Below, piece by piece: positions 21,719 to 32,544 of a stretch of 64,000 nt of DNA. Position 1 is the first letter of the stretch. Each line of letters begins with the position of its first letter. The notes under the pieces are model-generated. The model did not search any database. It had not been told where the DNA came from and was given only the letters and a program-made list of their open reading frames with translations. The position numbers and the translations under genes are program-made. The stretch lies in sequence record MZ443769.1. One strand, given 5' to 3'.

Positions 21719-22103
21719 CGACGATGCAGTCCGCAAAATGTATCAAGCCCGCAACCAACTCGTTGAACAAAAGATGCGAGAAATCTGGACTATGCGTGGT
21801 TGGACTATCGAGTGGGACTGGCACTGTGGATTTTGCGACGATGCCGAGTTCTTGTTTGATGCTGAGGGCAAGCGTCTATACTCCATAGAAAATGGTATTC
21901 CTCATGAAACGTCAATCGCTACGTTGCTGGACAAGCATAAGCTGAATGTCACGTACATGAAGAAAACTGTAAAGATCATAAACAAGCAAGCTGATAACCC
22001 TGTTACGGGGTCTGGTGATTGCATTTATATGGCATACATCAATTGGCTACTAGCCTTCGAAAAGCAGAAATTTGAGGAGAAGAATAAGTGCGCTGCGAAT
22101 TAA
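21687..22103 (+). CDS. hypothetical protein
   Basis: Overlapping operon ORF. Confidence 0.6.
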   Translation: MYQKLDTKKPDDDAVRKMYQARNQLVEQKMREIWTMRGWTIEWDWHCGFCDDAEFLFDAEGKRLYSIENGIPHETSIATLLDKHKLNVTYMKKTVKIINKQADNPVTGSGDCIYMAYINWLLAFEKQKFEEKNKCAAN

Positions 22104-22606
22104 CCGAACTGCCTATCGCTGTCGATCAAGCAGAAGCAATCATGGCCAGCGTGTTTGCTTTGGCGGTTGCTTCTAAATCAAAGCGCCGTGCTACTGCTGC
22201 AATGATGATTCAATTCATTGACGGCTTTCCGATGATCAAAAGCAGCGGCGTTAACGGTACTGTGCCGGGTTCGTCAAACGTTTGTGAAACACCAGACCTG
22301 CTGACAACGCTGCCTCATGTTATTCATGCGGAAGCGAACTGCCTTGACCGTCTGAATGATTACAACTCTCTGGTGACTGACCAAGACATTCTGTTTTGCA
22401 CAGACAGTCCGTGCCCAGATTGTTTGCGTCAACTGACAGACGAAGGCGTTAAGACCGTTGTGTATGCGCGTGAGTATCGCCTGACTGATCATCTCGACGC
22501 TTCTGATATTCGCATGTTCTGCCTCGATCTGAAAGCTGTTGAACAGCGTATGATTCGTAGCATCGAACGTATGTCGGAAGTTATCTCTACAACACCAAGT
22601 GTCTAA
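22088..22606 (+). CDS. dCMP deaminase family
   Basis: HAEAN and SPCPDC zinc motifs, SGVNGT. Confidence 0.85.
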   Translation: MRCELTELPIAVDQAEAIMASVFALAVASKSKRRATAAMMIQFIDGFPMIKSSGVNGTVPGSSNVCETPDLLTTLPHVIHAEANCLDRLNDYNSLVTDQDILFCTDSPCPDCLRQLTDEGVKTVVYAREYRLTDHLDASDIRMFCLDLKAVEQRMIRSIERMSEVISTTPSV

Positions 22607-23398: not shown

Positions 23399-23878
23399 AT
23401 GGACACGTCATTTGATAAATCAATCGCAGACGCACTGGCCAAAGCACTCGGTGTCCCTGCTTATATGTTAGATGCGACTGCTGACCAAGACGCTATCGCT
23501 CACTATCAAGCGCAAGACAAGCATACGAAACGTAAAGTCGCTTGTGGTCTGGCTCTGCTTCAACTTCAAATTCCTGATGATATGCGCTTCGACCTGTTGA
23601 ACAATCATCTCGAAGAAACCGAACAGCTTATCAAAAGTTCGTTCGAGGAACTCACAGCAAGTCTGGTCAATGTGCTGTCTCAAGACCAAGACTCTGCTAA
23701 ATCATCGCAACTCAATGGTGTTCGTCTCGCTATGCTGATGAATATCCTTGGGTTCGATAACGATACCCTTAAGGGTGTGCTACTCAGTCCGATGGCAACT
23801 CAAGCTGCTGCGATTGCTTCAACGGGCTTGAACGATATTGGACTGAAAATCCAACAACTGTACGACGAGAAAAAGTAA
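23399..23878 (+). CDS. hypothetical protein
   Basis: AAGGA RBS. Confidence 0.7.
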   Translation: MDTSFDKSIADALAKALGVPAYMLDATADQDAIAHYQAQDKHTKRKVACGLALLQLQIPDDMRFDLLNNHLEETEQLIKSSFEELTASLVNVLSQDQDSAKSSQLNGVRLAMLMNILGFDNDTLKGVLLSPMATQAAAIASTGLNDIGLKIQQLYDEKK

Positions 23879-24033
23879 TGAGCCAACCAGACAATCCACT
23901 TGCGAAGTTCTTTGATGAAGAAGCATCTTTCCCGGGCCTCGATGAAGCACAAGATCGCGTAGATGCAATGCGTGACGGTGGCGGCGAAGCACTGGAAGAT
24001 GGCGAAGCTGATTGTGACGGCTGCAAGATCTAA
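23878..24033 (+). CDS. 51-aa acidic protein resembling the NrdA C-terminal redox tail (absent from ORF track)
   Basis: TAATG coupling; MSQPDNPLAKFFDEEASFPGLDEAQDRVDAMRDGGGEALEDGEADCDGCKI; terminator follows. Confidence 0.7.
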   Translation: MSQPDNPLAKFFDEEASFPGLDEAQDRVDAMRDGGGEALEDGEADCDGCKI

Positions 24034-24039
24034 AACCAT

Positions 24040-24067
24040 TGGGGTGGCTGTGTGCTGCCCCATTTTT
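24040..24067 (+). terminator. intrinsic terminator, GGGTGGC/GCTGCCC family
   Basis: TGGGGTGGC-TGTGT-GCTGCCCCA-TTTTT. Confidence 0.8.
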
Positions 24068-24081
24068 GTTTGGAGAACGAA

Positions 24082-24543
24082 ATGGAATCTGAAATTCTAA
24101 CTAAGGCAGAGCGAGATCATTACCTCGTCGAGATCACTCGCTATCTGCACCCCTCTCTTCAACGTGAAGCTTTACTCAAACTTACTGCTGCACTCGATGC
24201 GATTATCGGTGATTCTTGCTTTGCGTTTGTGGACGAACCGACACGTATCTTGATAGACGGTCGTGCTCAAGAGGCTTTTCAGCAATGGGCTTCTGAGTAC
24301 CCTGACTGTCCTGCGCTCGCGGATAAGTCTCGTTTCTGGGTAAAAGTGGAGTTACGCAAAACATTAGCTCGGTCTTCTTTCCACATGGGGCTTTCTACTG
24401 AACTCTGTTCGCTTTATGCAGGCAACTGTTCTGTAGATTTGACATCACATATAAACAAGTGGCCTGATCATAAAATTCGAGCGGTATATCATCAGGCTAT
24501 TTCAAAAGAGGCCAACTCAGATGCAAACAGCATTCCGTTGTAA
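24082..24543 (+). CDS. hypothetical protein
   Basis: GGAG RBS before ATG 24082. Confidence 0.7.
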   Translation: MESEILTKAERDHYLVEITRYLHPSLQREALLKLTAALDAIIGDSCFAFVDEPTRILIDGRAQEAFQQWASEYPDCPALADKSRFWVKVELRKTLARSSFHMGLSTELCSLYAGNCSVDLTSHINKWPDHKIRAVYHQAISKEANSDANSIPL

Positions 24544-25051
24544 ATCGTGCAAGTACGTTCACATCGGTCGAGTAAGTAGTTGTGACTGCAATAACAAACC
24601 CTTTGCGTACACGTTGGTGCATATCATCGACGTACCGGAAAACGAAGACGAAGTGCCTGAATTCAAAAGCTTGATGCACTCGCGCGAACCTCGTTTCGTT
24701 AACTACGAGCACGGTAATCTGCTCAACGGAATCTATACGCATGTAGGCAAGCGCGAATCAGGTCGAGCTGATGTTCAAGTCATGGGGAACATGGGCAGCA
24801 CGTTCGAGAAGCGTGACGTCGGGACTAAGCTTATAGACCTGAACATGAAAGCAAACTGTGTGCTTGCAACCGCAGGTCCTGAATTGCTTGAAGTTGCGTA
24901 CATGGCTTATCAGTATTTCCACACTAAGCGTCTGGTGCAAGGTTCAAGCCCTCGCGTAGATAATCAAATCAAGTTGCTGGCTGAGGCAATCAAGAAAGCA
25001 ACTGACCTTTCACCTTTCAGGACTAAACAAAATGTTAGAGATGACGATTGA
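24521..25051 (+). CDS. hypothetical protein with N-terminal Cys cluster
   Basis: CKSC...CDC; ANCVLATAGPELLE..AIKKAT motif common in phage proteins. Confidence 0.65.
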   Translation: MQTAFRCKSCKYVHIGRVSSCDCNNKPFAYTLVHIIDVPENEDEVPEFKSLMHSREPRFVNYEHGNLLNGIYTHVGKRESGRADVQVMGNMGSTFEKRDVGTKLIDLNMKANCVLATAGPELLEVAYMAYQYFHTKRLVQGSSPRVDNQIKLLAEAIKKATDLSPFRTKQNVRDDD

Positions 25052-26645: not shown

Positions 26646-27746
26646 ATGTCAAAACAAATGCTTGACCTCCGCAACCCTCAGGACTTTGCTTTCTTTAACA
26701 TGCACAGTGCTGATGGCCAGTACATCTCTGTGTGTGACACTATCCTGCGTGAAGGTACGCTTGAGTGGGATGCAGCACGTACAGACGATCAGTGGCAGAC
26801 AATCATCGGTGTGGGTATGCAGTTGGTCAACACGCTGATCGCTTTCCCTGCGTTGCTGTCTGCGCGTAAGAACTGGGTAGCAGCCGTTGATGAAATGTGC
26901 TGGATGGCTCGCGGCGAAACGAATATCAAAACCCTGGGTTCTAAAATCTGGGACGAGTGGGCTGACGAAAACGGCGAGTGTGGTCCTATCTACGGTGAGA
27001 TGTGGCGACGTTGGCCTGATGTGAAAGCGTTTTTCGATGCAGCTGGTGCTTTACCTGCATTATGGTCTCCTGATCATATTCGCAATCAAGCGGAAATCTC
27101 GCGTATGCGTGAAGACGGATATCTCGAAACGCCTATGTCAGACGGTCGCATTCTGTTTGAAGGTCAGATTGACCAGTTCGCTAATGCGCTCGAACACATC
27201 ATGGCGCGTTCGCGCTCTCGTCGTATTCGCGTTCAGGGATTCAACCCGTCTTATGTGAACATGCAGGGTCTGCCTCCGTGTCATACCGAGTTTGAATTCA
27301 ACGTTACTCAGGCGACTGATTACGAAACCGCACAAATGAACTGGCGTGGGTTCGCACCGCAGAAAGACAGTCTGCATATCACTGTGCAATTACGTTCTAA
27401 CGACTGCCTGCTTGGGCGTCCCTTCAACATCATGGGCTACAGCGCCATGCACCAGTTGATTGCGAAGTGGGCTGGCCTGAACGTTGGTAGCTTCACGTTG
27501 AACTCGACTAACACTCACATCTATACGCACCACGTTGAAGCATATAAAAAGCAGCGTGAGCAGTACGTCGAACTTGAAACGCAGATGAAAGAGACAGGCA
27601 ATCCTATTCAGTATCCGTTGCTGGAAATCTCTGATGAAGTGCTTGGTCTGACTGCGAAAGAACTTCTCGATAACGTGAACATCGACTGGTTCCAGCTTCT
27701 CGACTATTCGCCTAAACCTGCTGTTCGTGGACGGGTGACTAAATGA
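26646..27746 (+). CDS. thyA: thymidylate synthase
   Basis: WDEWADENGECGPIYG, SRRI, LPPCH, RSND..PFN, THIY. Confidence 0.92.
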   Translation: MSKQMLDLRNPQDFAFFNMHSADGQYISVCDTILREGTLEWDAARTDDQWQTIIGVGMQLVNTLIAFPALLSARKNWVAAVDEMCWMARGETNIKTLGSKIWDEWADENGECGPIYGEMWRRWPDVKAFFDAAGALPALWSPDHIRNQAEISRMREDGYLETPMSDGRILFEGQIDQFANALEHIMARSRSRRIRVQGFNPSYVNMQGLPPCHTEFEFNVTQATDYETAQMNWRGFAPQKDSLHITVQLRSNDCLLGRPFNIMGYSAMHQLIAKWAGLNVGSFTLNSTNTHIYTHHVEAYKKQREQYVELETQMKETGNPIQYPLLEISDEVLGLTAKELLDNVNIDWFQLLDYSPKPAVRGRVTK

Positions 27747-29708: not shown

Positions 29709-30413
29709 ATGGCAAAAATTGCTAAAGCAAAAGCAAAGGACGGGAAAAAGAAAGGCGCTATGGCTATTGATTTGAAATCTTTCAAGTCGGCTAAACAGCT
29801 TAAAGGCGCTAAGTACAATCCACGTTTCATTACAGACAGTCGCTTGAGCGCACTCGAAAGTTCGTTGGGTAGCTTCGGTGACTTGTCTGGCATCGTGTTT
29901 AACAACAGCGTCAGTTCAGGCGTTCTTATCTCCGGTCACCAGCGTCTCAAGTCAATCAACGATTGGGAAACGCGCATCGAACTCCAGCCTACTTCTGACA
30001 AGTACGGTACAGTCGCTTTGGGTTACGTTCATGCAACGCATCCGAAGTCGAGCAAGACGATTAGCATTCCTCTGCGTATCGTAAACTGGAACGATAAGAA
30101 AGCCGAGTACGCTGCGAACATTGCTGCGAATGCGCACGGCGGTGAGTTCGATAACAAGAAGCTTGCGAATCTGGTTGAGAAACTTGACCTGACTTCTATC
30201 AAGCCTCAACTGCTCGGACTCGACCCGCTGGAAATCCGTGGTCTGCAACAGAAGCTGAAATCACAAGCACTTGTTGAAGGCGAGAAACGCGCAGGCAAAA
30301 CTACTGGTCAGATGAACGGTAGTACGGGCGCATTCAAAGAATACACACCAGATGAAGTCGGCGATAAGCTGTCATGCACCTGCCCACGCTGTGGATTTAA
30401 GTTCGAGGGATAA
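29709..30413 (+). CDS. ParB/Srx-like N-terminal domain protein with C-terminal Zn knuckle
   Basis: LKGAKYNPRFI..LESSL..FG..LISGHQRL..ANIAAN; ends CTCPRCGFKF. Confidence 0.8.
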   Translation: MAKIAKAKAKDGKKKGAMAIDLKSFKSAKQLKGAKYNPRFITDSRLSALESSLGSFGDLSGIVFNNSVSSGVLISGHQRLKSINDWETRIELQPTSDKYGTVALGYVHATHPKSSKTISIPLRIVNWNDKKAEYAANIAANAHGGEFDNKKLANLVEKLDLTSIKPQLLGLDPLEIRGLQQKLKSQALVEGEKRAGKTTGQMNGSTGAFKEYTPDEVGDKLSCTCPRCGFKFEG

Positions 30414-30414
30414 T

Positions 30415-32544
30415 ATGATCATCAAGCCGCCTACAATGAAAGAGATCAACGCGCAAGACAACAATTGGCGTGGCATGAGCTTCTTCGCAGGCTGTGGTGG
30501 TTCTTCTACCGGTCTCAAATGGGCCGGTATTAACATCATCTTGAGTAATGAGTTCGTAGACGTGGCGCGTGAGTCTTATCAAGCGAACCACCCATCTACG
30601 TTAGTTCTCCCTCACGATATCCGTCGTCTCGACCCGAAGAAGATTATGCAGCACTTCGGGATGGGTAAGGGTGAACTTGATTTCCTCGATGGTAGCCCAC
30701 CATGCTTCACTGAGAACACTCTGATTCACACTGCTGAGGGGATGAAGTTCATCTCTGATGTTAATGTCGGCGACATGGCAATGACTTCTGTTGGTCGTTA
30801 TCATGAAGTGTACGATACTATGGTGCGTCCTTATGTTGGTACGATGCACAAGATCGAAACACTGCTCGGCGCGAATAACGCAACGCCTGAACATCCGTTC
30901 TTCATTCGCCGCGTTCAACCTACCGGCTTGTGGTCTGAACCTTTCTGGTGTGATGCGAAAGATGTACAAGAAGGTGATTTACTCTCAACACCTCGAACAA
31001 CTCCTGACATGGGTGCTGACGCTTATCATGGTCAAATGTCATTGCTGACGCCTGTCATTCAGAGCTGGGTAACTTTCCCTGAGTTCTGGTGGGCTATCGG
31101 TCATTGGTGTGCGCACGGTACTCTTGAAGTTGTGCAGGGTGTCGATGTTGTTAGCTTCGAATCGCACACAGCTCAGGAAAACGATCTGATTGAGCAGGTG
31201 TTTGATGTTCTGAAAATCAGTAGCATCAACAGCGTAGACACAACCGTTGACCAGCGCAAGACGTATCGCGTTGTCATGGATTCAGAACTGTTTGCGTTCC
31301 TGAGCAAGTTCGTGGCACAGGGTAAGAACAACCTGTCTCGTCGTCTGCCGTCGATGATCTTCCACTTAGCTACTGAACTGAAACAGCAATTCATTCTCGG
31401 CTATCTCGGTCGTGACTACGTTAGTGCAATGGGCATGAGCCAGTTGATTAGCACAGACAACCGTCGCTTCCTCACTGAAATGAATTACCTGACGTGCTCT
31501 GCATTCAACAGACCTCTGTTCGATGGTATGTTGTTCTCTGATGTGAACTACGGTTCAGCGCTTACGCCTCGTGATCGCAATCAGAAGAAAGAGCATGTCG
31601 GCTATCTGCTGCTGCAAGATGAAAACAATTTCTTCTACGAGTTCAACGATAACGATCCACATCTGTGGGTTCAAGTGATTGAGAACCTAGCGTATCAGAC
31701 AACCTGTGACGTGTACAACTTCTCGGTCAGTGAAGACGAGACGTATGTGGCGAACAGCATTGTCGTGCATAACTGCAAAGGCTTCTCGACTGCTGGCGTG
31801 AAAGAAGAAGGTTGGGGTAAAGAAGTCAAGTACAGCGAGAACAAGAAACAGCAGGTTGATGACCTGTTCGATCAGTATTGCCGTATGATTAGTGGCTTCC
31901 AGCCTAAAGTGTTCACAGCGGAAAACGTCAGTGGTCTTGTGAAAGGATCTTCTAAAGGTTACTTCCTTGAGATCATGAAAACGTTTGACGAGCTTGGCTA
32001 CTATGTCAAAGCACCGTTGATTAACAGTGCATGGCTTGGTGTTCCACAGTCGCGTGAGCGTATCATCTTCATGGGTGTGCGTAAAGACGTTGCACATGCG
32101 TTGGGATATCGCTCAATCGGTACTGCTGTGCCTGCTGTCGTGCCTGCTTCAAGCATGGCTGTGCTTGCTGATGCTCTGCCTAACATCCTGCGATACAAAT
32201 CGGCTGAGAAAGATATCATCAAGTATAAGCCCGCGATGAACGGACCTATGCCTACGATAACTGCTGCTGATGCGATTGCGTATGAGACGGCACGATTCTC
32301 TTCTGCTGGATTTATCGAGGACAACAAGGGCATTCGTCGTAAGCTTACGATTGATGAACTGAAAGTTGTTTCCGGTCTGCCTGCTGATTACAAGCTGGTC
32401 GGTAAGTTCGAACAACAGTGGGAACGTCTCGGTCGTATCTGCGTACCTCACATGACTCATGCTGCTGCGACTGCGTTGATCAATCATATTCTTGTGCCTT
32501 ACGCCAAGAAGAAGAAACAGAAACCGGGCGCTCTCTTCCGCTAG
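30415..32544 (+). CDS. C5 cytosine transferase (DNMT fold), intein-containing; candidate carboxymethyltransferase (CmoX-like)
   Basis: Motif I FFAGCGG, IV GSPP|C, VI ENVSGL, VIII VPQSRERI, IX RKLTIDEL, X LGRICVP (Arg instead of Asn); ATG at 30415 follows the ParB stop. Confidence 0.88.
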   Translation: MIIKPPTMKEINAQDNNWRGMSFFAGCGGSSTGLKWAGINIILSNEFVDVARESYQANHPSTLVLPHDIRRLDPKKIMQHFGMGKGELDFLDGSPPCFTENTLIHTAEGMKFISDVNVGDMAMTSVGRYHEVYDTMVRPYVGTMHKIETLLGANNATPEHPFFIRRVQPTGLWSEPFWCDAKDVQEGDLLSTPRTTPDMGADAYHGQMSLLTPVIQSWVTFPEFWWAIGHWCAHGTLEVVQGVDVVSFESHTAQENDLIEQVFDVLKISSINSVDTTVDQRKTYRVVMDSELFAFLSKFVAQGKNNLSRRLPSMIFHLATELKQQFILGYLGRDYVSAMGMSQLISTDNRRFLTEMNYLTCSAFNRPLFDGMLFSDVNYGSALTPRDRNQKKEHVGYLLLQDENNFFYEFNDNDPHLWVQVIENLAYQTTCDVYNFSVSEDETYVANSIVVHNCKGFSTAGVKEEGWGKEVKYSENKKQQVDDLFDQYCRMISGFQPKVFTAENVSGLVKGSSKGYFLEIMKTFDELGYYVKAPLINSAWLGVPQSRERIIFMGVRKDVAHALGYRSIGTAVPAVVPASSMAVLADALPNILRYKSAEKDIIKYKPAMNGPMPTITAADAIAYETARFSSAGFIEDNKGIRRKLTIDELKVVSGLPADYKLVGKFEQQWERLGRICVPHMTHAAATALINHILVPYAKKKKQKPGALFR
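30703..31773 (+). mobile_element. 357-aa intein with degenerate LAGLIDADG endonuclease, inserted before the catalytic Cys
   Basis: Starts CFTENTLI, block B ATPEHPF, ends ANSIVVHN with +1 Cys; blocks C and E read AIGHWCAHG and FILGYLGRD. Confidence 0.93.

Follow-up and report, generated by a model that had tools for sequence, protein, structure and literature searches.

A stand-alone phage mini-protein resembling the C-terminal redox tail of class Ia ribonucleotide reductase

The window analyzed here, the first 64 kb of the 261,095-bp record of Erwinia phage pEp_SNUABM_52 (MZ443769), carries on its plus strand a gene for a 51-aa acidic protein (positions 23878-24033, stop codon included; locus tag pEaSNUABM52_00038) whose C-terminal end copies the redox tail of NrdA, the α-subunit of class Ia ribonucleotide reductase (RNR). 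pEp_SNUABM_52 is a jumbo myovirus of the species Sasquatchvirus Y3 with Erwinia amylovora as its host. Its relative Y3, which is 97% identical and whose record is 99% complete, has a homologue (Y3_038), and GenBank labels both products as hypothetical proteins. De novo supply of DNA precursors depends entirely on RNR, and the C-terminal tail that re-reduces this enzyme is generally held to do so only when tethered to it.

Likeness to the NrdA tail and selection on the gene

The window protein ends in ...MRDGGGEALEDGEADCDGCKI. Compared with NrdA tails, its residues 32-51 (23971-24030, plus strand, as are all window features below) comprise an RDG anchor, a Gly- and acid-rich linker and a DCDGCKI end. 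The cysteine pair read from the sequence has CX2C spacing (24013-24024): Cys46 (24013-24015) and Cys49 (24022-24024), which we take to be the counterparts of NrdA Cys754 and Cys759. The tail of class Ia NrdA (E. coli residues ~735-761) has the same RDG anchor, acidic flexible linker, cysteine pair and K-I terminus. Unlike that tail, the window protein is encoded by a gene of its own, has no catalytic body (Pfam gave no match in it to PF02867, Ribonuc_red_lgC, the ten-stranded catalytic barrel of NrdA) and bears a conserved N-terminal segment of ~30 residues.

The host tail is nearly constant in sequence: in each of 80 Enterobacterales nrdA loci, which include five Erwinia species as well as Pantoea, Klebsiella and Citrobacter, the end is DDGCESGACKI, with the tail running NTRDGAED..DDL.PS.QDDGCESGACKI. 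This agrees with the E. coli-type tail that the original prediction had quoted (NTRDGAED...DDGCESGACKI). The homologues in Alexandravirus, a genus of Erwinia and Dickeya jumbo phages, terminate in ...MRDGGGEVVDDKDADGCESGACKI; their DGCESGACKI end is identical to the host NrdA C-terminus at 10/10 positions, and the RDG anchor and acidic linker are also common to both. The window form is CX2C (RDGGGE...ADCDGCKI), compared with CX4C in host NrdA. This variant is not degenerate: full-length phage NrdAs (755-781 aa) end in DC[DE]GCKI, and it is the tails of T4-like phage NrdAs that the window form most resembles. NrdA of the T4-like Escherichia phage Lw1, for instance, ends in NTRDGAGEDEAEDCEGCKI (NTRDGAGE...EDCEGCKI), and the window protein is very similar: RDGGGEALEDGEADCDGCKI. 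A third phage group has a CEGGGCKI end.

A profile of the family was also searched against all PDB sequences. The ten best matches were E. coli NrdA C-termini and the 11th was chain B of 1QFN, a 25-residue NrdA peptide whose structure was determined in mixed-disulfide linkage to glutaredoxin 1. E-values were just ~0.5 because the matched stretch is short. When the window protein itself was compared with the PDB by phmmer, only chance-level matches resulted, and tblastn with just the tail half yielded none, owing to the low-complexity filter. The resemblance to the NrdA tail is not chance but homology or mimicry. The 10/10 identity in Alexandravirus and the rank of NrdA C-termini among the profile matches strongly support the core claim, put forward in the original prediction, that this is a stand-alone protein mimicking the class Ia NrdA C-terminal redox tail.

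The only PHROGs match of the window protein is phrog_10239, a group of ~47-aa phage proteins with no annotation, in which residues 26-51 align with profile positions 22-47 of 47 (E 1.2e-6). The C-terminal half is thus matched and the N-terminal half is not, and the Alexandravirus homologues have no match to this profile, which probably represents Agricanvirus-type members such as RAY gp108. The ESM Atlas returned just clusters of 43-50-aa hypothetical proteins (score 0.83), which we regard as a lead. The window protein is probably disordered. It differs from thioredoxin-fold redoxins in being acidic, in being too short for the fold at 51 aa and in carrying its CX2C at the extreme C-terminus, and a Pfam scan found no match in it to the thioredoxin (PF00085) or glutaredoxin (PF00462) families.

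The ATG of the tail gene overlaps the TAA of the preceding open reading frame (ORF) in a TAATG stop/start arrangement (23876-23880) indicative of translational coupling. That upstream gene (23399-23878) encodes 159 aa without a family match and is a conserved neighbour only in Sasquatchvirus and Alexandravirus. Starting 7 bases past the stop codon of the tail gene is a terminator-like GC-rich hairpin of 9 pairs followed by a T-run (24040-24072), identified by consensus match only. Both elements had been described in the original prediction and are present. In Alexandravirus, every genome examined has a syntenic homologue of 52-54 aa, located after a dCMP deaminase gene, a ~250-aa gene and a ~160-aa gene, the last of which it overlaps by 4 or 14 nt.

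The gene is under purifying selection. Its 11 distinct nucleotide alleles encode just 7 protein variants, and the median pairwise ratio of non-synonymous to synonymous substitution rates (dN/dS) across them is 0.18, with similar values for residues 1-31 (0.19) and for the tail (0.16) and with between-lineage dS of ~0.8-1.2. Compared with the window, metagenome contigs from 4 independent sequencing runs (food, wastewater and others) show 36 differing sites in 1.1 kb. Just 2 of the 36 lie in the tail ORF, and both are synonymous third positions of Pro codons. Positions 23878-24033 are a real gene, constrained in both halves. The suggestion that it might be a gene remnant is refuted by the low dN/dS across the 11 alleles, by the constraint on both halves, by the synonymous nature of the ORF variants and by conservation across two genera and in many other phage groups.

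The N-terminal half, residues 1-31 (23878-23970; alignments A1 and A2), contains a conserved MSxP start, a hydrophobic-acidic FFD/FD.D..L motif and a PGLDEAxxR segment. It does not derive from NrdA and is presumed to be a second binding element.

Tail-bearing proteins in phages without ribonucleotide reductase

We scanned IMG/VR for DNA that codes for CESGACKI or [DE]C[DE]GCKI directly before a stop codon, which returned true NrdAs plus many short ORFs. Similar free-standing ORFs, which the original prediction had suggested looking for, are thus numerous, and they occur in phages that lack RNR. The window protein has the features by which we propose to define a free-standing RNR-tail family: it is a short phage ORF with an acidic linker and a [DE]-C-x(2-4)-C-K-I end in a genome without RNR.

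The first type consists of acidic proteins of 37-65 aa that can be aligned with the window protein (alignment A2, 23 sequences). They have in common an N-terminal hydrophobic-acidic FD.D..L motif, an LDEAE.R segment and an acidic linker; the G-C-K-I end is invariant in 23/23, and the upstream cysteine is likewise present in 23/23, with 2-4 residues between the pair. Members of this type are found in Agricanvirus jumbo phages (RAY gp108, of 47 aa; Simmy50; Ea35-70), in Dibbivirus (PSKM gp02, AAM37, DIBBI), in Loessnervirus and its relatives (Erwinia phage Y2, Pantoea phage SSEM1) and in several uncultured 240-290-kb phages.

The second type, unrelated to the first, consists of 61-aa proteins from Citrovirus podophages that infect Klebsiella and Citrobacter; they are encoded directly after the family-A DNA polymerase gene and end in DDCESGACKI or, in CVT22, NDCGDSCVI. 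We considered whether the members at loci L017 and L045 could be frameshifted ends of NrdA and rejected this, as the upstream gene is the family-A DNA polymerase and not nrdA. One protein of this type, gp34 of Klebsiella phage KpnP_VR7901 (L046:4001-4186), is labelled 'global DNA-binding transcriptional dual regulator binding protein'. This 'H-NS-binding' label seems to rest on the place of the gene after a DNA polymerase gene, like that of T7 gp5.5; all other family members are annotated as hypothetical.

In the third type the tail is attached to a PF13876 (N4 gp49 / Sf6 gp66) domain, in N4-sized contigs, and the fourth comprises a 71-aa protein encoded by a 90-kb phage and a 208-aa form into which a long poly-acidic stretch is inserted. 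The latter (L138:5791-6417) is encoded by a 267-kb jumbo phage syntenic with Y3 and Alexandra, and its mini-protein motif follows ~100 residues of almost pure Asp/Glu. We rejected the reading that the upstream 159-aa gene and the mini-protein have fused in it, since similarity to the 159-aa gene is absent.

The tail is carried by acidic mini-proteins and by three unrelated N-terminal modules, and both cysteines are kept in all families despite CX2C, CX3C and CX4C spacing. To judge from these sequences, such retention at variable spacing fits dithiol-disulfide cycling better than simple plugging.

The scans also returned a ~133-aa non-acidic, His/Ser/Arg-rich ORF ending in ...FTYLDCEGCKI, which is near-identical across L131, L134, L137 and ~35 further loci in dozens of 8-57-kb viral or prophage contigs. 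Just its last seven residues are common with the RNR tail, and the ORF could be an unrelated protein or could arise from translating a conserved gene in the wrong frame.

A six-frame search with hidden Markov models found no PF02867 in the complete record of pEp_SNUABM_52. The same search of Y3 found no PF02867, NrdB (PF00268), NrdD (PF13597), thioredoxin (PF00085) or glutaredoxin (PF00462). As a positive control, it recovered NrdA in 5/5 phage contigs. The absence of an nrdA body upstream of the tail gene, noted in the original prediction, therefore extends to the whole 261,095-bp record and to Y3, and the idea of a split or trans-encoded NrdA was rejected with it.

The same holds for the other carriers, which represent roughly ten lineages. 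None of 32 carrier records has PF02867 (NrdA/class II) or NrdD (0/24 and 0/25 among those at least 90% complete), and PF02867 was not found in the named isolates PSKM, Y2, RAY and KpnP_VR7901. For comparison, NrdA is encoded in at least 5,000 of 50,697 phage records, mostly of large phages. Because the phage is without RNR, the tail cannot serve a phage enzyme, and any RNR partner must be host NrdAB. This excludes a shuttle for phage RNR, one of the functions initially proposed, and there is no phage nrdA that could have lost its tail. The presence of tail-bearing proteins in RNR-less phages suggests that these phages plug into host RNR.

In some carriers the tail gene has a redoxin gene beside it. 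Four RNR-less jumbo genomes (L140, L142, L175 and L178) encode a glutaredoxin of 84-95 aa near the tail gene (PF00462, E 4e-17 to 6e-11), with CPYC, CVFC, CAFC or CPFC as the active site. The glutaredoxin gene ends 2-3 nt before the tail gene in 3/4 of them; the remaining genome has it ~450 nt downstream. In an unrelated 90-kb RNR-less phage (L172:6598-7931), the compact gene order is dCTP-deaminase-like (a call made by reading the sequence by eye), 71-aa tail protein, 82-aa ORF and thioredoxin-like protein; the last (CQPC; PF00085, E 1.4e-12) lies ~330 nt from the tail gene. A redoxin gene thus stands beside a free RNR tail, without RNR, in two independent lineages. We regard this pairing as the strongest contextual evidence that the cysteine pair works with redoxins, and it speaks more for an electron relay than for a purely steric role. 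The nrdC and nrdAB modules of T4-type phages likewise link a phage redoxin genetically to an RNR tail; in T4-like phages, however, the tail is part of a full phage NrdA, whereas here it is alone, with or without a redoxin, and the enzyme is the host's.

More generally, the tail gene usually lies amid nucleotide-metabolism or replication genes. Its neighbours are a MazG-like pyrophosphohydrolase and thymidine kinase in RAY, and ThyA and primase in Y2; ThyA is encoded in 14/14 of the jumbo-sized carriers (186-287 kb).

Electron relay, inhibition and other roles

We favour a mechanism in which the small acidic protein would serve as a free-standing working copy of the redox tail of the class Ia RNR α-subunit. 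Its CX2C-K-I end would fit both sites of an authentic tail, namely the active site of thioredoxin 1 or glutaredoxin 1 (Trx1, Grx1) and the oxidized Cys225-Cys462 pair in the catalytic site of host NrdA. A host redoxin, or in some relatives the neighbouring phage glutaredoxin or thioredoxin, would reduce the tail protein, which would then pass electrons in trans to host NrdA. Such a phage-controlled re-reduction route would sustain the turnover of host NrdAB to the benefit of a phage needing ~260 kb of DNA per virion, and the conserved N-terminal half would add affinity or specificity. We give a shuttle that sustains host RNR turnover an even chance of being the correct reading, and favour it because both cysteines are kept everywhere, redoxins are co-encoded in two lineages and the genes nearby are anabolic. 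What we infer is that the protein binds NrdA and thioredoxin or glutaredoxin (Trx/Grx), that it undergoes redox cycling and, above all, the net direction of the effect (stimulation versus inhibition).

We predicted the complex of the window protein with E. coli NrdA residues 1-737, from which NrdA's own tail had been removed. The interface score (ipSAE) was 0.58 (0.60, 0.53 and 0.58 in the runs), compared with 0.00 for the best of three controls. The predicted local distance difference test (pLDDT) of the partner was at least 61 with NrdA versus 28 with an unrelated protein in its place, and 58% or more of the contacts recurred from run to run. The mark used for such predictions was reached by 51/78 solved complexes and 2/108 mismatched pairs; scores of 0.60 or less were seen for only 5/78 solved complexes, yet for all 4 mismatches that passed. 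The predicted fold offers weak support for binding of the window protein to NrdA and raises its likelihood modestly. Two of the functions in the original prediction, the phage-RNR shuttle and the gene remnant, have fallen away, and the other two, a host-RNR shuttle and a thioredoxin decoy, are both compatible with the data. The host-RNR shuttle gains support from this fold and from the redoxin genes that adjoin tail genes in two RNR-less lineages.

We also asked whether the N-terminal half mimics the tail of NrdB. The C-terminus of Erwinia NrdB is GENDFDDFQL, which resembles the FD.D..L of several family members. In a composition-preserving shuffle, however, the resemblance was not significant for the window protein (p = 0.93) and reached p < 0.05 in just 4/23 sequences, so that NrdB-tail mimicry is not supported. 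Synthetic peptides of the R1 and R2 C-termini are likewise short RNR tails, which bind a redoxin or R1 in trans, but they are laboratory tools, whereas the window protein is a natural, selected gene product. R2-tail peptides inhibit RNR by binding R1; the window protein differs from them in that its N-terminus has no significant resemblance to the Erwinia NrdB tail.

Several points weigh against the shuttle. Its kinetic benefit is not obvious, because a free peptide competes with NrdA's tethered tail, and to our knowledge the known small disordered RNR regulators (Sml1, Spd1, Hug1) are all inhibitors. The complex prediction yields no interface, and its score may stem from solved NrdA-peptide complexes that the predictor had already learned. 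The absence of RNR from carriers is phylogenetically clustered, and so is suggestive and not statistically decisive. Most carriers, pEp_SNUABM_52 included, have no redoxin gene beside the tail gene, and in Dibbivirus the tail gene sits between helicase and terminase genes. Nor does expression support it: among the sequencing runs covering the locus there are no clear RNA runs.

The first alternative, which we consider unlikely though the least so of those discussed here, is that the protein acts as a Sml1-like throttle. It would bind host NrdA, block re-reduction by NrdA's own tail or docking of NrdB, and lower host synthesis of deoxynucleoside triphosphates (dNTPs). Possible benefits are a halt to host replication, salvage from degraded host DNA and avoidance of a dNTP rise sensed by DRT2, DRT4 and DRT9. 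There is precedent in yeast: PMC6382339 describes Sml1, after Zhang et al. 2007, as an inhibitor of R1 that competes at the site of tail-mediated regeneration. A motive to keep RNR output low comes from a 2026 preprint (10.64898/2026.10.27.754916), according to which a dNTP rise from phage NrdAB activates DRT4, and likewise DRT2 and DRT9. For salvage and conversion, the carriers have thymidine kinase, ThyA and dCMP deaminase, but no RNR, and the weakly supporting fold places the protein on NrdA. A 261-kb phage without RNR, however, probably needs host de novo dNTP synthesis; a pure blocker would not be expected to keep both cysteines in every lineage or to pair with phage Grx/Trx genes; and the N-terminus failed as an NrdB-tail mimic in the shuffle.

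Sml1, Spd1, Hug1 and Dif1 are likewise small disordered proteins acting on RNR, and Sml1 is described in PMC6382339 as specifically disrupting tail-mediated R1 regeneration. They are nonetheless eukaryotic cellular inhibitors without the tail cysteine pair, whereas the window protein is viral, carries a tail copy and may stimulate. Sequence similarity between the two is not evident, with no direct comparison made.

It is less probable again that the protein works apart from RNR catalysis, with the tail as a portable docking tag for Trx/Grx. Such a protein would titrate host redoxins as a decoy, or recruit them as an adaptor, through its variable N-terminal modules, to some other phage or host client, for example part of the replisome or an enzyme that depends on a disulfide. 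The occurrence of the tail on at least four unrelated N-terminal modules (acidic mini-proteins, 61-aa Citrovirus proteins, 71-aa protein and PF13876 gp49/66) fits this, as do the redoxin genes beside tail genes in two lineages. In 1QFN the NrdA 25-mer is bound to glutaredoxin 1, so the tail by itself is able to bind that redoxin. A decoy or adaptor does not, however, predict the universal absence of RNR from carriers, and the kept RDG anchor and exact K-I terminus suggest a fit to NrdA too; moreover, reduced redoxins are not sequestered by a reduced dithiol peptide.

Far less probable is a metal-binding or otherwise unrelated acidic peptide (a Zn- or Fe-bridged CX2C dimer, a DNA mimic or the precursor of a peptide natural product) that came to look like NrdA by convergence. 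The protein is indeed very acidic, probably disordered and ends in a CX2C motif, but the 10/10 identity with the host NrdA terminus in sister phages and the RDG anchor point to descent or mimicry, and scans of the neighbours found no modifying enzymes adjoining the window tail gene. That the ORF is a decaying leftover of a lost nrdA, or a functionless chance ORF, is barely credible: the tail must originally derive from the 3' end of an nrdA gene and the ORF is short and of low complexity, but its dN/dS is low across well-diverged lineages, its N-terminal half is conserved and unrelated to NrdA, its synteny, coupling and terminator are conserved, and tail proteins occur in many phage genera.

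Local setting and implications

In the window, the tail gene belongs to a nucleotide-metabolism cluster that includes a dCMP deaminase gene (22088-22606; Pfam PF00383, with the same annotation in Y3) and a thymidylate synthase gene (26646-27746; PF00303, E 1.2e-55). Scans of the tail protein and its neighbours with Pfam, NCBIfam and PADLOC gave nothing informative.

Three further observations concern genes downstream. The thymidylate synthase has 366 aa compared with the 266 positions of the Pfam model, that is, ~100 inserted residues, and the ThyA homologues of all 14 jumbo-sized carriers have comparably long open frames (305-623 aa). A 176-aa protein encoded two genes further on from the tail gene (24521-25051) starts with a CxxC...CxC zinc-ribbon-like motif; it matches phrog_1273, to which no function is assigned, and is a neighbour kept in Y3, Alexandra, L138 and L129. 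Farther along, at 30352-32544, a 730-aa gene resembling C5 cytosine DNA methyltransferases is split by an intein (Pfam DNA_methylase and Intein_splicing/Hint).

Full-text searches of the literature, on the tail strings and on phage proteins that act on host RNR, turned up no earlier account, and we know of no RNR accessory factor that copies the α tail, NrdH, NrdI, NrdR, YfaE, Sml1, Spd1 and Hug1 included. For these two reasons we rate a free-standing RNR tail, as read from sequence, as what would be a categorically new kind of gene product. A broader proposal, which we hold tentatively and at somewhat short of an even chance, is that the RNR α tail is a portable viral plug, mounted on several carrier modules and sometimes accompanied by its own glutaredoxin or thioredoxin, which controls the electron relay of host RNR. 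If so, these phages could raise or lower host dNTP output with no RNR gene of their own, and the plug would possibly spare them the DRT2, DRT4 and DRT9 defences that sense the dNTP surge from phage NrdAB. Such a plug would be a host-takeover factor of a class not recognized before, and the first RNR tail found to act naturally in trans.

A natural free tail that is under selection and confined to RNR-less phages would show that a tail in trans can serve the re-reduction step, or sabotage it. It would also explain how large phages without RNR secure or control their dNTP supply, and would add a type of small host-takeover protein built from a copied host linear motif. The natural variants (CX2C, CX3C and CX4C, with and without a cognate phage redoxin) would be of use in probing how the tail is recognized by the RNR active site and by redoxins. 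The tail likeness also provides a testable function for dozens of hypothetical micro-genes in phages of Erwinia, Pantoea, Serratia, Klebsiella, Citrobacter and Dickeya, several of which are under study for biocontrol or therapy.

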